Shown here piece by piece: positions 2,683 through 11,760 of a stretch of 32,000 nt of DNA. This DNA comes from Zygophlyctis sp. KS116 (lineage: Eukaryota; Fungi; Chytridiomycota), in assembly GCA_054661495.1 (NCBI GenBank), contig BAAFSQ010000075.1, forward strand, positions 8,090-40,089. The letters are read 5' to 3'. The position numbers and the translations under genes are program-made. The notes beneath the pieces are model-generated. The model did no database searches, had not been told where the DNA came from, and saw nothing but the letters and a program-made list of their open reading frames with translations. Position 1 is the stretch's first letter; each line of letters opens with the position of its first letter.

Positions 2683-3815
2683 TCATTCTTCGTCGCAGTG
2701 ATTGCAAGCGTTCAAAATTGCTTGAATCTCTCTTGATTCTTCCGATGAAGATATGTTCAGTAACCCTGCCAACTGTTTTTGACTTAGAAACAATGTCCTC
2801 ATTTTTACTATATTAGAATCCTCCATTTTTTCTAAATGCATCCAAACACCAAGAATGATTAAACTTGGAGGTATTCCAATGCATAAATAGTCTAAAAATT
2901 AAAAAATATTTAATGAAATACCCTGTATGATAAAATCAAAGTATTTGTTAAATTTATACATGATATCCCGTCTAAGCAGAGTTGAGGGTGAATTGATCTT
3001 GAACAAATTATGTTCTGGCTTAATTTCAGCGTCAAAAATATCAGGAGTTCCAAGTGAATTGAAGATTTCATGCAACAAAGTCTAAAATGTTTAAAAAAAC
3101 AGAATACATGAGGAGTAACGATATTAAAATCCCAATCAAGCGCCGCAATAGCCTTTCTCTCCATTCTTTTTAAATCCTTAATATTATGATCATCTATTGA
3201 AACATTTGCCATCTCGGTACATGTAGGCTCCAAAATTTCTTCATACACTTTAGCCGAAATGAAAACACAAGTAAGTGCCAACAAATTGAATTGTTTTCTC
3301 TGAGTCACTTTGACTTTTGACAAGTATATATCCAAGTATGCTACAGCAATATAGAAAGTTTCATCTAAAAATAGAAAATCCAGACAAATGCCCTTCATAA
3401 AAAACACCAATTCTATGATCAGCATTAAATTATAAATACCACTTCTTCTAGACTTTTTGAAATGCCCATTCTGCCTAGTCTGCATATAATCGGGATTGGC
3501 AAGTATCCTACATTCCTTATCAATTAAATGCTGAAGAGCCTTTGACGGGCGCCTAGATACATTTCCCAATCTACTTATCGGACCTCCTCTAAGACCAAAA
3601 ACAGCAGGCGAAAGAACACTATTATCCAGATCAATGATTTCATGCTGCTTCTCTATTGTGGTTTTGGAAGATACCGGAGTGAGATAACCAAAGTTTGGAG
3701 ACTCAAACAGCTTCTGGATGGACTGGGGAAGAGATTCAGTGACATGATTCCAGACGCTAGACCATGATTGGTCAATCTTTTGTCGCTTACTATCATTAGA
3801 GTGTGGACTTAACAT
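2683..3815 (-). CDS. Cyclin with a divergent A/D-like cyclin box; ~349 aa if initiated at ATG 3815, or the C-terminal half of a Cdc25-cyclin fusion
   Basis: Cyclin-box motifs ETFYIAVAYLDIYLS, QFNLLALTCVFISAKVYEE and DLKRMERKAIAALDWDFNIVTPH. Introns 3413-3439 (27), 3082-3107 (26), 2892-2921 (30). TGA at 2683-2685. Confidence 0.85.
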
Positions 3816-3870
3816 TGGAAATATTTCAGCCCTAACGGACTCTACAATGTACAAGTTCCGATTAAATTAT

Positions 3871-5197
3871 CTATTCCCTACTTAAAAATCCTTCAGAGAA
3901 ACATTTTCTAAAAGATCTCTTGCCGACATTCTTGAGTTCGTCCTTATATTCTATAGAGTTCATCGCGATATATCCTTGTGGATCGCAGCGGTCCGGGTAT
4001 TTGGTATAAAAGTTTCTATAACCACCTTGAAGTACATACATTTCTGGATAGAATAATGATGGGTATTCATTAAGTTGACGATCAGTTGATCTAAAGTGAA
4101 GAGCCCTGATTTTAAGTCAAGTGTTTAAAAGAATTACATTCTAGGAGCCCTCTGTAATGAATATTCACAATGAAAAATAACAACTCTCTTTGGAGTTTTG
4201 GTAGGATTTGAGAAAAATCTTTCTTCTAATGTTTTCGGACATGATACATTTTCAGCCCCAACTATGTGACCTCCGGCAAATTCAAAAGAATATCGGCAAT
4301 CAACAATAGTAAAAGAATCTATGGTTTCAGAATAATCTCCATCTAAAAGAGATATTAACTTTTCATGAAAAATTCTTAATTACAGTTTCGGGAGCAATTT
4401 GTTTCAAGTGATTCTGACATTGTACAAATGGTAAAAGAGATTCAACTTCCTGAAAGAAAGAACAGTCTGGAGCTGATACAGTTTTTACGCATTTCAATGC
4501 TTTAGATGTATCAGTTCCAAAATTTTGACAATGATTATTATTCGCAGCTTTCTATGCATAAAAAATATTCATTAATGTACAGGGACTTTGGAAGATCTAG
4601 CATTCCAATGACTTACGCCAGAATTTGATTTTAGCATTGTACGTGTAATTTCTTTTCTGTTAAATGGAGGAACTGGCGGTCTATTTCCTTTAAATAAAAC
4701 AGAACAGTCGCTATTATTGTTAATAAATTAGGTATACTTTTCAAATAAAGTGGAATCTTTGTCCGATTGAAACTTTTTAAACAAGTGCATTTCTTGATTG
4801 TTTGAGTTCGGGCCTTGCAGTCTACCATAAGCAGTTTGAGTCCTTGAAAATTGTCTCTTTGCCGGCAATGCAAAAGATCCAACTGGAGACTTAAATAAGT
4901 CATCACTTAATTCATTTTTAGCATGTGCCAGATCTTGAAGTAAGCACCTACGTGGTGTTTTGAGTCTTTGAGTTAAACCAACTAGTAATACCCTTGGTTT
5001 TGAATGCTAAAGTTTACATCCATATCCAATGCTAGAACTGACAGTGGGGATTTCATGGCAAATATTCCTGTAAGATCCATTCCTTCTGCGCCTTGCTTTG
5101 GAGACCGTGGAAATCCAGAAACATCAGAATTATCTAAACCATTTGAAGTAAAATCTATATTGAATGTTTGTAAGGTCATAGTATTCATATTATCCAT
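3871..5197 (-). CDS. cdc25: Cdc25/Mih1 M-phase inducer phosphatase (rhodanese fold), ~395 aa
   Basis: Splicing introns 4966-4991, 4711-4737, 4552-4580, 4359-4383 and 4106-4137 gives IVDCRYSFEFAGGHIVGAENV, the catalytic loop VIFHCEYSLQRAPRMALHFRSTDRQLNEYP (intact HCX5R) and YPEMYVLQGGYRNFY. The N-terminus has SP/TP sites. The catalytic domain is absent from the ORF track. Confidence 0.92.
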
Positions 5198-5961
5198 ATT
5201 TTAAAAGTTATTATCGTTCCTATGGTATAAATAATGCAAAGCGCTAAAGAAAACTCAAGATCTCAAAGAGAATTAAATATAACAAACCGTTAGCGATAGC
5301 ATACCTATTAAAAGTATTAAAATTAGTATGTGACACGCTATATTAATTAGTTGTAAAGGATACGTCACTACTATAACCCCGAATGATCAAATGGAACTAC
5401 CATATATGACTGGATGGAAACAATTTATAGAGATTTATTATAAATTAAAAGTAGTAGAGATTATTCATTGAGCGCTGCAAAACTGCTAAATTTCCAGGAT
5501 AATTGTTGTGTTTTAGATAACTTTCACGATTGATTTTGGCCTCTAAAAATGAATTTGATCTCTTAATTTAGGTAGTGTAGTCCATTTTTCCAGGTCAACC
5601 CACATGGATATTGAACGTCCGAATTTTGCACTAACCAGCCCAAATCGGTGGCACCAACGACTACAACGAAGAGTAATTATGGGGAACCGAAAAACTGCTA
5701 GTTATCTTAATCAATCCATTCATGATCGATTCTAAAAAAAGTATGCTATTGGCTTCCCCTTTAAGGATTTAATTGAGTTTTTCCATCGAAATTTTCAGCT
5801 TTTTGTAGGTATATTTATTCACATCATAGAATTCAATAAATTTTATTTTATGGTATATCTTTGCTAGATATATGCTATTATGACCTCACGGGCCACGATT
5901 GCTCCGATCGCGTTGATTTAAACGGAAACATTGCGATCGTTAATATAATATAGTAAATAGT

Positions 5962-8971: not shown

Positions 8972-10338
8972 TTATTCTTCAACTTGTAAAGTCAATAGCC
9001 CCACTTCGTCAGCACTCTTAACAATTCTTTCCGCATCATCCTTGGACAAAGTCGCTAAATATTCGTTTATTTTGTCTACATCTTGCAATAAAATGGCTTC
9101 TATTTATTTTATAATCTAAATGTAATACCTTGAAAGTCACGATCAAAGCCTGCAAAAACCTCTGCACGCTTCTCACCTTCTCCATCCGGTCCTACTGGGA
9201 GAGCAAAAGATCCATCAGGCTGCTTAGCAGCTTCGACTCTTGCCAATGCTTCTAATTGCTCCCGCCGCTCTTCCTCTTGAGTCTGAGCATGAATTTCCTT
9301 TACTCTATTCTGAATGCGAGCAAAAGTATCTGCGCAATCCTTTCTAAACATATCCATTGCTGCTCTGGAAGAAGTTTCCATCCTTTTCATTATAAAATTC
9401 AAATACCTTTTAAAAAACATACTTATACCATCTTTTCCCAATAATCCACAATATTGAAGGATCAATGACTGATGAACACAATTTTTGGCTTCTTTTGACT
9501 TACCAGCCATTTCCAGTCTAAAAGCCTCTGCCAAAATTTCATCTGAATATTTCTGACATGCTAATTCAGGATTACAACTCAAAGCCTTGAAAGATGATTC
9601 GATACTAGTCAAATGAGCAAACTTTTCAGCAGGCGGATAAGTAATATAATCTTCTTCTCCTTGTTCATCCATTGATTCAGAATTTGCAGTTTTTGAAGGA
9701 TCGTGTATAGTTTCAACAACCATTTCCTTTTTAGAACTTGATTCAGCAGCAGCAGCCACCGCAACAGGAACAGACTCTACTTTTTTCTGAGCAATAGACT
9801 AAATTTAGCATTTTTTTAAAATTACTGATTTATCAAACCCAGTTTTCATTGTTTCAGAGGTAATTTTTTTAGATATTTCTACCTGTTCCTTTTCTAATTC
9901 TATAGAAACCTCTTTTTGACGATTTTCCAGTTTTAAAATCCAATCTTGAACATTTTTAGTTTCAACAATTTCTGCCATCATTTTATCTAAATCTATCCTT
10001 TGCTTTAAAAATGGATCTGGCAGAGGATAATCCCAAGCAGGATTTCTATCAGTCATAACCATTTCATAAACTTTTTTCTCAAAATCCTTATTCCAGTCTC
10101 GAACTAGCATCTGTAATTCATTTAAATCGTCAATACTTTTGAGCTGTGAGACTATTTTTAGAGAGAGATCATTTTCCATTTTTAGCGCTGAAACTTTATC
10201 TTGGCGGTCCTTTCTTTTCGCATGAATCTGACTCTGCTTCCATCTGATCATTGACTTTTTATCTACGTTTGGATGGCACTCAAAATCCTCATCGTCTGAT
10301 AGTTCAATTGCATCCCATTTGGAGTAATCCACTGGCAT
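8972..10338 (-). CDS. CDC37: Hsp90 kinase co-chaperone Cdc37, ~428 aa
   Basis: Diagnostic N-terminus MPVDYSKWDAIELSDDEDFECHPNVDKKSMIRWKQ (ATG at 10338, not 10431) and CVHQSLILQYC. Introns 9799-9825, 9383-9406, 9100-9128. Confidence 0.93.
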
Positions 10339-10484
10339 TTGGCAACTCGACCACAAACACACAATTGTCAAGGATCCTAAATCTAAGCTAGAAGGCATGT
10401 CCGAACCATTATTGTACTGTTTTTGTATCATGTATGCATGTATCTAATCTTACTTGAAACTACCGCATGCATATGCATCATGAA

Positions 10485-10510
10485 ATCAATAGATCAATAG
10501 ATCAATAGAT
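10485..10510. repeat. Tandem 8-mer (ATCAATAG)x3 in the Cdc37/Orc5 divergent intergenic region
   Basis: Sequence atcaatag atcaatag atcaatag at, preceded by ATGCAT-rich palindromes (about 10430-10480). Confidence 0.7.
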
Positions 10511-10587
10511 AAAGAGGGATTAAAACAAAATTATGAATTCTAGAGCAAAAAATTAAAAATTAAATCCGCTGTAAATTTAAAAAAGAT

Positions 10588-11760
10588 ATGCGCTTACAAC
10601 AATTGTCTTATCTAAAATCTCTCAAAGAGTTTCCTCCAAATGTTTTATTCATTACCGGTCCTTCTTCATCCGGTAAAAGTACAACTGTAAGAGAATGGTC
10701 CGAATCTCTAGTAACAAAATCGTTTTCTAATTTAAAATCCAAGTATTCTCAACAACTTTTATTTGAAGATATTCTAAATCAGATTTCAAATACTAAAAGT
10801 AATCATGAAAATGGATTTAAAGTCTATTCTCGCTGTGAATCCAAACAAGAATTTATTCTTGAGCTACAATCACTAAATCTAGACAATTATTTTATAATAT
10901 TGGATTCTGTAGAGAAATTAGATTCAAGTCTATTCAATTTTTTTACAAAATTACCAGAAATTATTAAAGGGACTGTAGTATTGATTTCAAAGGTTTCTTG
11001 GACTGATTTAATATCTCTTGGAAATTCTCTAGTCAATCCTCTAATTTTAGAATTTCCTGCTTATACTAGAGATGAGATTTTAGATATTTTATCTCTAGAT
11101 TGTCCAATGGATGAACAAGTGGAATTTTATCGTACTTTTGTGAAAATAGTCTATGAAACAGTCTATAGACCAACTAAAAATTTGGATGAAATTAGGACTT
11201 TGTCTCTTGTATTATTTCCAAAATTCATAGAACCAATTCAACAAGGAAAAGCTAAAAAGGAAGAAATTTCTAAATTAGTCTCTAATGTTTCAAGTTATCT
11301 AAAAGAAATTGGGTCTAGTCTTATACTGGGAACTTTTACGTCTACAAATTCTTTAGAACTGCCATACTATACCAAATTCTTACTAATTTCAAGTTTTTTA
11401 GCCTCTTTTAATCCTCCAAGATTGGATGTACGGTTTTTCTCAAAAGAAAAAGAAGCAAGAGGGATTTTAAAGAGAAAGAAATCTACTAAAATACGTCAAC
11501 AGTTGCTTGGACCTAGAATATTTCCTTTTAGTAGAATGTTGGCGATTTTCTATTCTATAATTGATGAACCTTTACAAGATTCAATCATTATTAATCAGCA
11601 AGTGACTACTCTAGTCAATTTAAAATTACTCTCTAGAATTTCATCTCAGGACAAATTAGATGGACTGAAATTCAAGTGTAATTCCCCTTTTGAAATTGTC
11701 AATGCAGTAGCAAGTTCTGTTAAAATGGATCTAGTAAAGTACTTGAATGAGTGGATCTAA
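10588..11760 (+). CDS. ORC5: Origin recognition complex subunit 5
   Basis: Walker A GPSSSGKST, IILDSVEKL, FPAYTRDEI, and ORC5_C motifs LPYYTKFLLISSFLASFNPPRLDVRFF and LLGPRIFPFSRMLAIF. Apparently intronless. Confidence 0.92.
   Translation: MRLQQLSYLKSLKEFPPNVLFITGPSSSGKSTTVREWSESLVTKSFSNLKSKYSQQLLFEDILNQISNTKSNHENGFKVYSRCESKQEFILELQSLNLDNYFIILDSVEKLDSSLFNFFTKLPEIIKGTVVLISKVSWTDLISLGNSLVNPLILEFPAYTRDEILDILSLDCPMDEQVEFYRTFVKIVYETVYRPTKNLDEIRTLSLVLFPKFIEPIQQGKAKKEEISKLVSNVSSYLKEIGSSLILGTFTSTNSLELPYYTKFLLISSFLASFNPPRLDVRFFSKEKEARGILKRKKSTKIRQQLLGPRIFPFSRMLAIFYSIIDEPLQDSIIINQQVTTLVNLKLLSRISSQDKLDGLKFKCNSPFEIVNAVASSVKMDLVKYLNEWI

Follow-up and report, generated by a model that had tools for sequence, protein, structure and literature searches.

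The DNA considered here, called the window below, is a stretch of 32,000 nucleotides (nt) from the freshwater chytrid Zygophlyctis sp. KS116 (contig BAAFSQ010000075.1 of assembly GCA_054661495.1). On its minus strand, between positions 2683 and 5197, it holds two cell-cycle genes in tandem: a Cdc25 phosphatase gene and, directly downstream, a cyclin gene, with a spacer of 55 nt between them. Judged from the sequence and its conservation, these are very probably two separate genes, an ancient tandem whose members, in this compact genome, now lie only 55 nt apart. The original prediction for this locus had gone further. It proposed that a 40-nt intron containing the Cdc25 stop codon could join the two genes in frame, giving a Cdc25-cyclin fusion or a splice switch. 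This idea is not supported: the donor is not conserved, the spacers do not preserve the frame, an indel interrupts the would-be linker, and no fused orthologue was found in the genomes compared or among the ten longest of the best 150 protein matches.

The locus was compared with nine related genomes, i.e., five close lake-chytrid lineages (L001/L002, L007, L008, L004-L006 and L003), of which all loci are genomic with introns retained, and four named genera. Protein searches were made exon by exon; protein lengths were obtained by exon arithmetic.

The two genes

The Cdc25 gene occupies positions 3871-5197 of the minus strand. It starts with the ATG at 5197, is divided into six exons by five GT-AG introns and stops with TAG at 3873-3871. 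With the standard code the exons sum up to 1188 nt or 395 codons. A genome scan found one copy in the 12.7-Mb assembly. The active-site loop HCEYSLQR, an HCX5R motif, can be read directly at 4149-4172 and aligns with the catalytic loop region of CDC25. The exon at 4140-4358 matches the Pfam family Rhodanese (PF00581) with 31.5 bits, the cut-off being 22.2. The best matches of both catalytic exons among solved structures are human CDC25A/B/C (E 4e-15 and 5e-18), and their sole match outside CDC25 is an Sb/As reductase with an E value of 2e-4. By these scores, the predicted product is nearer to CDC25 than to the remaining rhodaneses, the Acr2/arsenate reductases among them. The intact Cdc25 of the original prediction, with its HCEYSLQR loop and its end GFLSRE-TAG at 3871-3873, is indeed there on the minus strand.

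The introns of Cdc25 are tiny. Intron 1 (4966-4991, 26 nt) is the one that is shown to be spliced in RNA. The RNA came from two lake metatranscriptomes that contained 5-6% of the words sampled; they yielded two contigs at the locus. One of them, X1, corresponds exactly to 4761-5028 minus the 26 nt of intron 1 and differs in nothing else. Introns 2 (4711-4737, 27 nt) and 3 (4552-4580, 29 nt) are called because the frame is restored only upon their removal. Removal of intron 4 (4359-4383, 25 nt) likewise restores the frame and leads to the conserved sequence in which APET is followed by LISLLDGDY. Intron 5 (4106-4137, 32 nt) lies directly past the active site; its excision restores the frame and joins HCEYSLQRAPRM to ALHFRSTDR (APRM followed by ALHFRSTDR), which is the canonical continuation of Cdc25. 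The second contig, X2, comprises 151 nt, matches 4105-4255 exactly and still contains intron 5. It would be either unspliced pre-mRNA or DNA carried over into the library. In the former case, retention of an intron directly past the active site would truncate Cdc25. A ciliate-type code, in which TAA and TAG mean Gln, was considered as an explanation of the tiny introns that would also extend Cdc25. It was discarded: the standard code with introns of 25-32 nt restores every frame, Cdc25 of L003 ends with TGA TGA at the same codon, and the orthologues of named chytrids end at the same motif.

Upstream of Cdc25, the minus strand at 5330-5400, about 135-200 nt before the ATG, contains non-coding blocks that do not vary among the five close lineages, in contrast to the diverging sequence around them. 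In order, they read TTTGATC.TTCGGGG, GTGACGTAT.CTTT, which contains a CRE-like TGACGT, and GCGTGTCA. A further invariant block, CATAGGAACG, is located about 25 nt before the ATG. These blocks are candidates for Cdc25 promoter elements or for a small unannotated RNA. Rfam yielded no match anywhere in the window, these blocks included.

The cyclin gene extends over positions 2683-3815 of the minus strand, from its first in-frame ATG at 3815 to the TGA at 2685-2683. Its four exons amount to 1050 nt or 349 codons. Pfam places the cyclin box (Cyclin_N, PF00134) at 3126-3536, residues 94-230 of the translated segment 3108-3815, with 72 bits against a cut-off of 23; the genome scan recovered it again. 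The cyclin box contains intron 1 (3413-3439, 27 nt). This intron is in frame and free of stop codons, so that programs calling open reading frames (ORFs) read through it and easily miss it. It is precisely absent in L003 (L003:5512-6291), where RS is directly followed by EL at the place which the intron takes elsewhere, a clean and recent intron loss among close relatives. Intron 2 (3082-3107, 26 nt) is supported by frame restoration, and all six aligned sequences share its GTA...TAG ends without variation. Intron 3 (2892-2921, 30 nt) also restores the frame and is the sole GT-AG solution at its junction. The start Met and the N-terminus, M-x-SP...KRQK.D..W..VWNH, are conserved across all relatives.

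What kind of cyclin is this? Its closest named relatives are proteins of Kappamyces, Terramyces, Globomyces, Blyttiomyces, Chytriomyces and Batrachochytrium, and in named chytrids its full-length orthologues stand alone, with lengths of 330-383 amino acids (aa). The genome has 13 Cyclin_N loci. Three of them score 135-170 bits, and the cyclin of the pair follows as the fourth with its 72 bits. When a profile of the chytrid orthologues was compared with solved structures, cyclins D3/D1 came first with 95 bits, followed by A2 (86), E1 (85) and B1 (70). A mitotic B-type cyclin would look different: B1 is lowest in this series, and the Cyclin_N score falls far short of those of the three leading loci. 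Tentatively, the cyclin is closer to the D-type (G1/S) than to the mitotic B-type, as far as modest score differences can tell. Pfam found no Cyclin_C match in the last exon (2686-2892); the profile of the orthologues can be aligned with cyclin D/E structures as far as its positions 309-318, and so into the second fold.

Past the cyclin, the next ORF on the same strand starts 86 nt after the stop codon (spacer 2597-2682); in L004 the corresponding gap is 76 nt (L004:11110-11184). Tandem spacers below 100 nt are therefore usual here, as had been supposed from the window alone. Pfam found no match in the product of this downstream ORF.

The tandem and its spacer in related genomes

A protein search with the first cyclin exon led to contigs from metagenomes, which were 98%, 78%, about 75% and 67% identical. 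Each of the five close lineages has Cdc25 directly upstream of the cyclin on the same strand. Its stop is at the same codon in all of them, TAG in four and TGA TGA in L003, and is preceded by the tail ...CFSEGFL(S/N)RE. The four named genera have the same-strand tandem as well, and in each of them it is annotated as two genes. There, the distances are much longer: 367 nt in Terramyces sp., 572 nt in Globomyces pollinis-pini, 581 nt in Kappamyces sp. and 1309 nt in Batrachochytrium dendrobatidis. Orthology of both genes in these genera was confirmed by local tblastn. In all four, Cdc25 ends with ...F(S)(E/D)GFLR*, and this common ending implies that the position of the Cdc25 C-terminus is conserved across the order. 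From the window genome to Batrachochytrium, i.e., across the Rhizophydiales, the Cdc25-cyclin tandem has been kept. Around the orthologous cyclins of Blyttiomyces, Chytriomyces and the aphelid Amoeboaphelidium, no Cdc25 tandem was found. For the question whether relatives have fused or adjacent orthologues, this means that adjacency is real in five close lineages and four named genera; fused orthologues did not turn up among the ten longest of the best 150 matches.

The neighbours of the pair have moved. PEPCK and ORC5, in the lineage of the window together with CDC37, are situated upstream of Cdc25 here (window 9808-11757; L004:682-4876), whereas in Batrachochytrium and Terramyces PEPCK and ORC5 are found on the downstream side of the cyclin (L013:10722-16466; L010:8313-10027). 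Since they have switched sides, the pair must have come through a local rearrangement unbroken. Even in Amoeboaphelidium (L015), genes for UQ_con, LIM and F-actin cap are near the cyclin.

The spacer proper (3816-3870, minus strand) measures exactly 55 nt, as predicted, and is read as non-coding. Its lengths in the window lineage and the close relatives are 55, 50, 58, 35 and 93 nt, which leaves 1, 2, 1, 2 and 0 modulo 3. Nucleotide conservation among the close lineages collapses directly past the Cdc25 stop and returns at the ATG and the N-terminus of the cyclin. The common stop codon, spacer lengths that do not preserve the frame, the loss of the donor and the indel in the would-be linker (see below) together make the pattern of a non-coding spacer, not that of a coding linker or a conserved intron.

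Within the spacer, one element stands out. TCCGTTAGGG (3830-3839, minus strand, non-coding), located 14 nt upstream of the cyclin ATG, has been retained in four of the five close lineages, at a distance of 6-15 nt from the ATG and amid diverging spacer sequence. The 12.7-Mb genome contains it only once, its shorter or degenerate cores are rarer than reversed-pattern controls, and it was not found in the 367-1309-nt spacers of the named genera. For these reasons it does not qualify as a general promoter or terminator motif and looks locus-specific. TCCGTTAGGG is read as a candidate cis element of the cyclin, belonging to its promoter or its 5' leader. The related idea that TAACGG serves Cdc25 and the cyclin as a common Myb/MSA-like promoter element had to be given up: with six copies against 4.7 expected it is not enriched in the window, and the copy that precedes Cdc25 has not been kept in the relatives. 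In L008 (L008:2527-2590), an extra in-frame ATG is seen 42 nt upstream of the cyclin ATG and 16 nt past the Cdc25 stop. It would add 14 residues by reading through TCCGTTAGGG, but is probably not used.

The candidate fusion intron

According to the original prediction, the segment 3842-3881 of the minus strand is sometimes spliced out, which would create a Cdc25-cyclin fusion of about 750 aa and tether the phosphatase to the complex of the cyclin with its cyclin-dependent kinase (CDK); retention versus removal would then work as a switch. The underlying observations hold. Read from 3881 to 3842, the segment is a 40-nt GT-AG candidate that contains the Cdc25 stop, and its excision joins Cdc25 to the cyclin in frame and without a stop as GFL-KSVRAEIFP-M. 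No other GT..AG join of 18-60 nt at this junction is in frame and free of stops. The GTA start is common to the local introns, and L001/L002, a strain of 98% identity, has the identical 40 nt. Nevertheless, the candidate is probably not used.

Such a join is cheap. When the 55-nt spacer was shuffled, 36% of the trials offered one or more GT..AG joins of 18-60 nt that were in frame and free of stops, close to the chance of one in three that had been anticipated, and the join in the window is therefore no better than chance. Nor does the candidate resemble its neighbours. The eight introns of Cdc25 and cyclin are 25-32 nt long and start with GTA(A/T/C)(A/T), whereas the candidate is longer (40 nt), as had also been noticed from the window alone, and starts with GTAGGG, being G-rich at +4 to +6. 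It has this start because the letters are the Ser-Arg codons of the Cdc25 tail FLSRE, with the donor GT taken from the Ser codon AGT. When intron lengths were counted in the window and in three relatives by joining ORFs de novo, the peak was at 25-29 nt, with only background above about 36 nt. This census is noisy, has a flat background and does not yield a clean splice-site model.

The relatives are more telling. In L004-L006 the donor GT reads AT, the codon being AAT, by a change from Ser to Asn. In L007 and L008 the acceptor of the window is out of frame due to a 1-nt indel inside the would-be linker, between the conserved element and the ATG. From the candidate donor, L003 and L004 have no in-frame join at all, and L007 and L008 reach one only via a different acceptor. 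Splicing would, moreover, cut off the conserved terminal tail of Cdc25. In short, the in-frame 40-nt GT-AG probably arose by chance, the Ser codon AGT happening to supply a GT and the spacer happening to contain AG dinucleotides. A second potential donor, 54 nt upstream of the Cdc25 stop, shares its frame in four lineages with an acceptor that precedes the conserved element. It was dismissed too. Introns of 74-88 nt would result, the GT belongs to a Val codon that varies freely among GTC, GTG and GTA, and after correction for multiple testing the coincidence is insignificant.

Fused proteins were also looked for elsewhere. In a HMMER scan of 1.84 billion representative proteins with a cyclin exon as query, no Rhodanese domain was detected in the ten longest of the best 150 matches; they contain Cyclin_N only. 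The literature was searched for natural Cdc25-cyclin fusions and for clusters of the two genes in chytrids; nothing relevant turned up. One protein deserves comment. In B. dendrobatidis JEL423, OAJ41156.1 (P0167; L013:7001-12915), a "cyclin domain-containing protein" of 1243 aa, combines Cyclin_N with ORC5_lid and ORC5_C. By its domains, it reads as a merged gene model of the pair's cyclin orthologue and the downstream neighbour ORC5; other annotations of this species give 821 aa. The case demonstrates how easily tandem neighbours become fused on paper.

How the locus may work, and what it resembles

The very probable reading remains that of two separate genes. A single-copy Cdc25 would be translated to its conserved C-terminal tail ...RKCFSEGFLSRE and stop at the TAG 3871-3873, and a D/G1-like cyclin would start from its own conserved ATG at 3815, presumably from a transcript of its own. 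The two genes have probably been same-strand neighbours since at least the ancestor shared by the sampled Rhizophydiales (Batrachochytrium, Globomyces, Terramyces, Kappamyces and the lake lineage). In the compact 12.7-Mb genome, the spacer probably shrank from hundreds of bases to the 35-93 nt of today. TCCGTTAGGG, just upstream of the cyclin ATG, may be part of the cyclin's own promoter or leader. Because the spacer is so short, the control sequences of the cyclin and the 3' end of Cdc25 would have to overlap neighbouring sequence.

Some observations do not fit this reading comfortably. With only 35-58 nt, a spacer can hardly accommodate both a terminator and a promoter; conventional ones would need more, which opens the way to co-transcription. 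The context of the cyclin ATG is weak, with C or T at -3, as compared to the AAAATGG of Cdc25. The metatranscriptome contigs at the locus cover 4761-5028 and 4105-4255 only, and neither reaches 3816-3881. Finally, the donor at -8 gives some in-frame join in three of the five lineages, albeit through differing acceptors.

It is doubtful, yet worth stating, that the tandem is a selected co-expression unit with shared or coupled transcription, in which TCCGTTAGGG acts as the coupling signal and, in the compact lineage, occasional splicing into a fusion perhaps occurs. Order and orientation of the pair have indeed been kept although the flanks were rearranged and the spacer shrank from 1.3 kb to 35 nt. 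In this respect the pair behaves like other conserved pairs of functionally related neighbours, or microsynteny, in fungi: the order Cdc25 to cyclin and its orientation are kept in five Rhizophydiales lineages despite rearranged flanks. It differs in that the enclosing block (UQ_con, F-actin cap, LIM, ORC5 and PEPCK) is itself unusually stable, in part even in the aphelid. As the block is generally stable, selection on the pair itself is suggested, not demonstrated. Also the fallback of the original prediction, a tightly linked pair of an enzyme and a subunit of its substrate complex, fares accordingly. The linkage is real and reaches back to Batrachochytrium; the cyclin, however, is closest to the D-type and not to the B-type which the idea implied.

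Co-transcription in a plainer sense is unlikely. It would mean one read-through or bicistronic primary transcript, or heavily overlapping transcripts, from which the two proteins are made separately, TCCGTTAGGG acting in RNA processing or internal initiation instead of as a promoter. Some fungi and green algae are reported to make polycistronic mRNAs. The very short spacers of all five compact lineages (35-93 nt), the same-strand order across the Rhizophydiales and the position of TCCGTTAGGG merely 6-15 nt before the cyclin ATG would suit such a mechanism. The less compact relatives, however, have the genes 367-1309 nt apart and do without TCCGTTAGGG, and a Cdc25 ORF of 395 codons with many internal AUGs would probably render leaky scanning or reinitiation at the cyclin inefficient.

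The fusion itself is very improbable: to the evidence given above, including the two separately annotated genes in each of the four named genera, has to be added that a D-like cyclin is not a classic client of Cdc25, and a cyclin that is more likely a G1/S than a mitotic partner weakens the functional logic of the proposal.

A natural Cdc25-cyclin fusion would be a striking rewiring of a core switch of the cell cycle, if it were true. The evidence speaks against it. There is a practical lesson, though. In genomes with introns of 25-30 nt and spacers of 35-90 nt, in-frame "fusion introns" between neighbours arise in about one third of the cases, and they should be tested against relatives before they are believed. 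What stays with the reading of two separate genes is that two cell-cycle regulators have remained neighbours throughout an order of chytrids to which the amphibian pathogen Batrachochytrium also belongs, and co-regulation of Cdc25 and a G1-like cyclin can be tested in culturable species.

Taken singly, the partners resemble well-known families. With the Cdc25/Mih1/String family the phosphatase shares the rhodanese catalytic domain, the HCEYSLQR loop, the DCRYSFEFAGGH motif, the best matches to CDC25A/B/C, a long and poorly conserved N-terminal regulatory region and the single copy. Only its C-terminal tail ...FSEGFLSRE is peculiar, a conserved ending specific for chytrids; nothing else unusual was found in the protein. 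The cyclin shares with the G1/S (D-type or Cln-like) cyclins the Cyclin_N box, the top profile scores on D3/D1 and stand-alone orthologues of about 350 aa, and the orthologue of B. dendrobatidis has been automatically annotated as "G1/S-specific cyclin-D3". It differs in being outside the three canonical high-scoring cyclin loci of its genome, and Pfam detected no Cyclin_C in its last exon.

The proposed fusion, too, has its counterparts. Like the merged gene models of tandem neighbours, it concerns two same-strand genes that can be joined on paper via one short GT-AG; here, however, the merger came from a reader and not from a gene caller, and the partner is Cdc25 instead of ORC5. In fission yeast, Coudreuse and Nurse are said to have engineered a cyclin-CDK fusion, Cdc13-Cdc2, in 2010. 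Both cases embody the idea that covalent tethering of cell-cycle partners can simplify control. Yet that fusion is synthetic and links a cyclin to its CDK, whereas the candidate considered here would have linked a cyclin to Cdc25.

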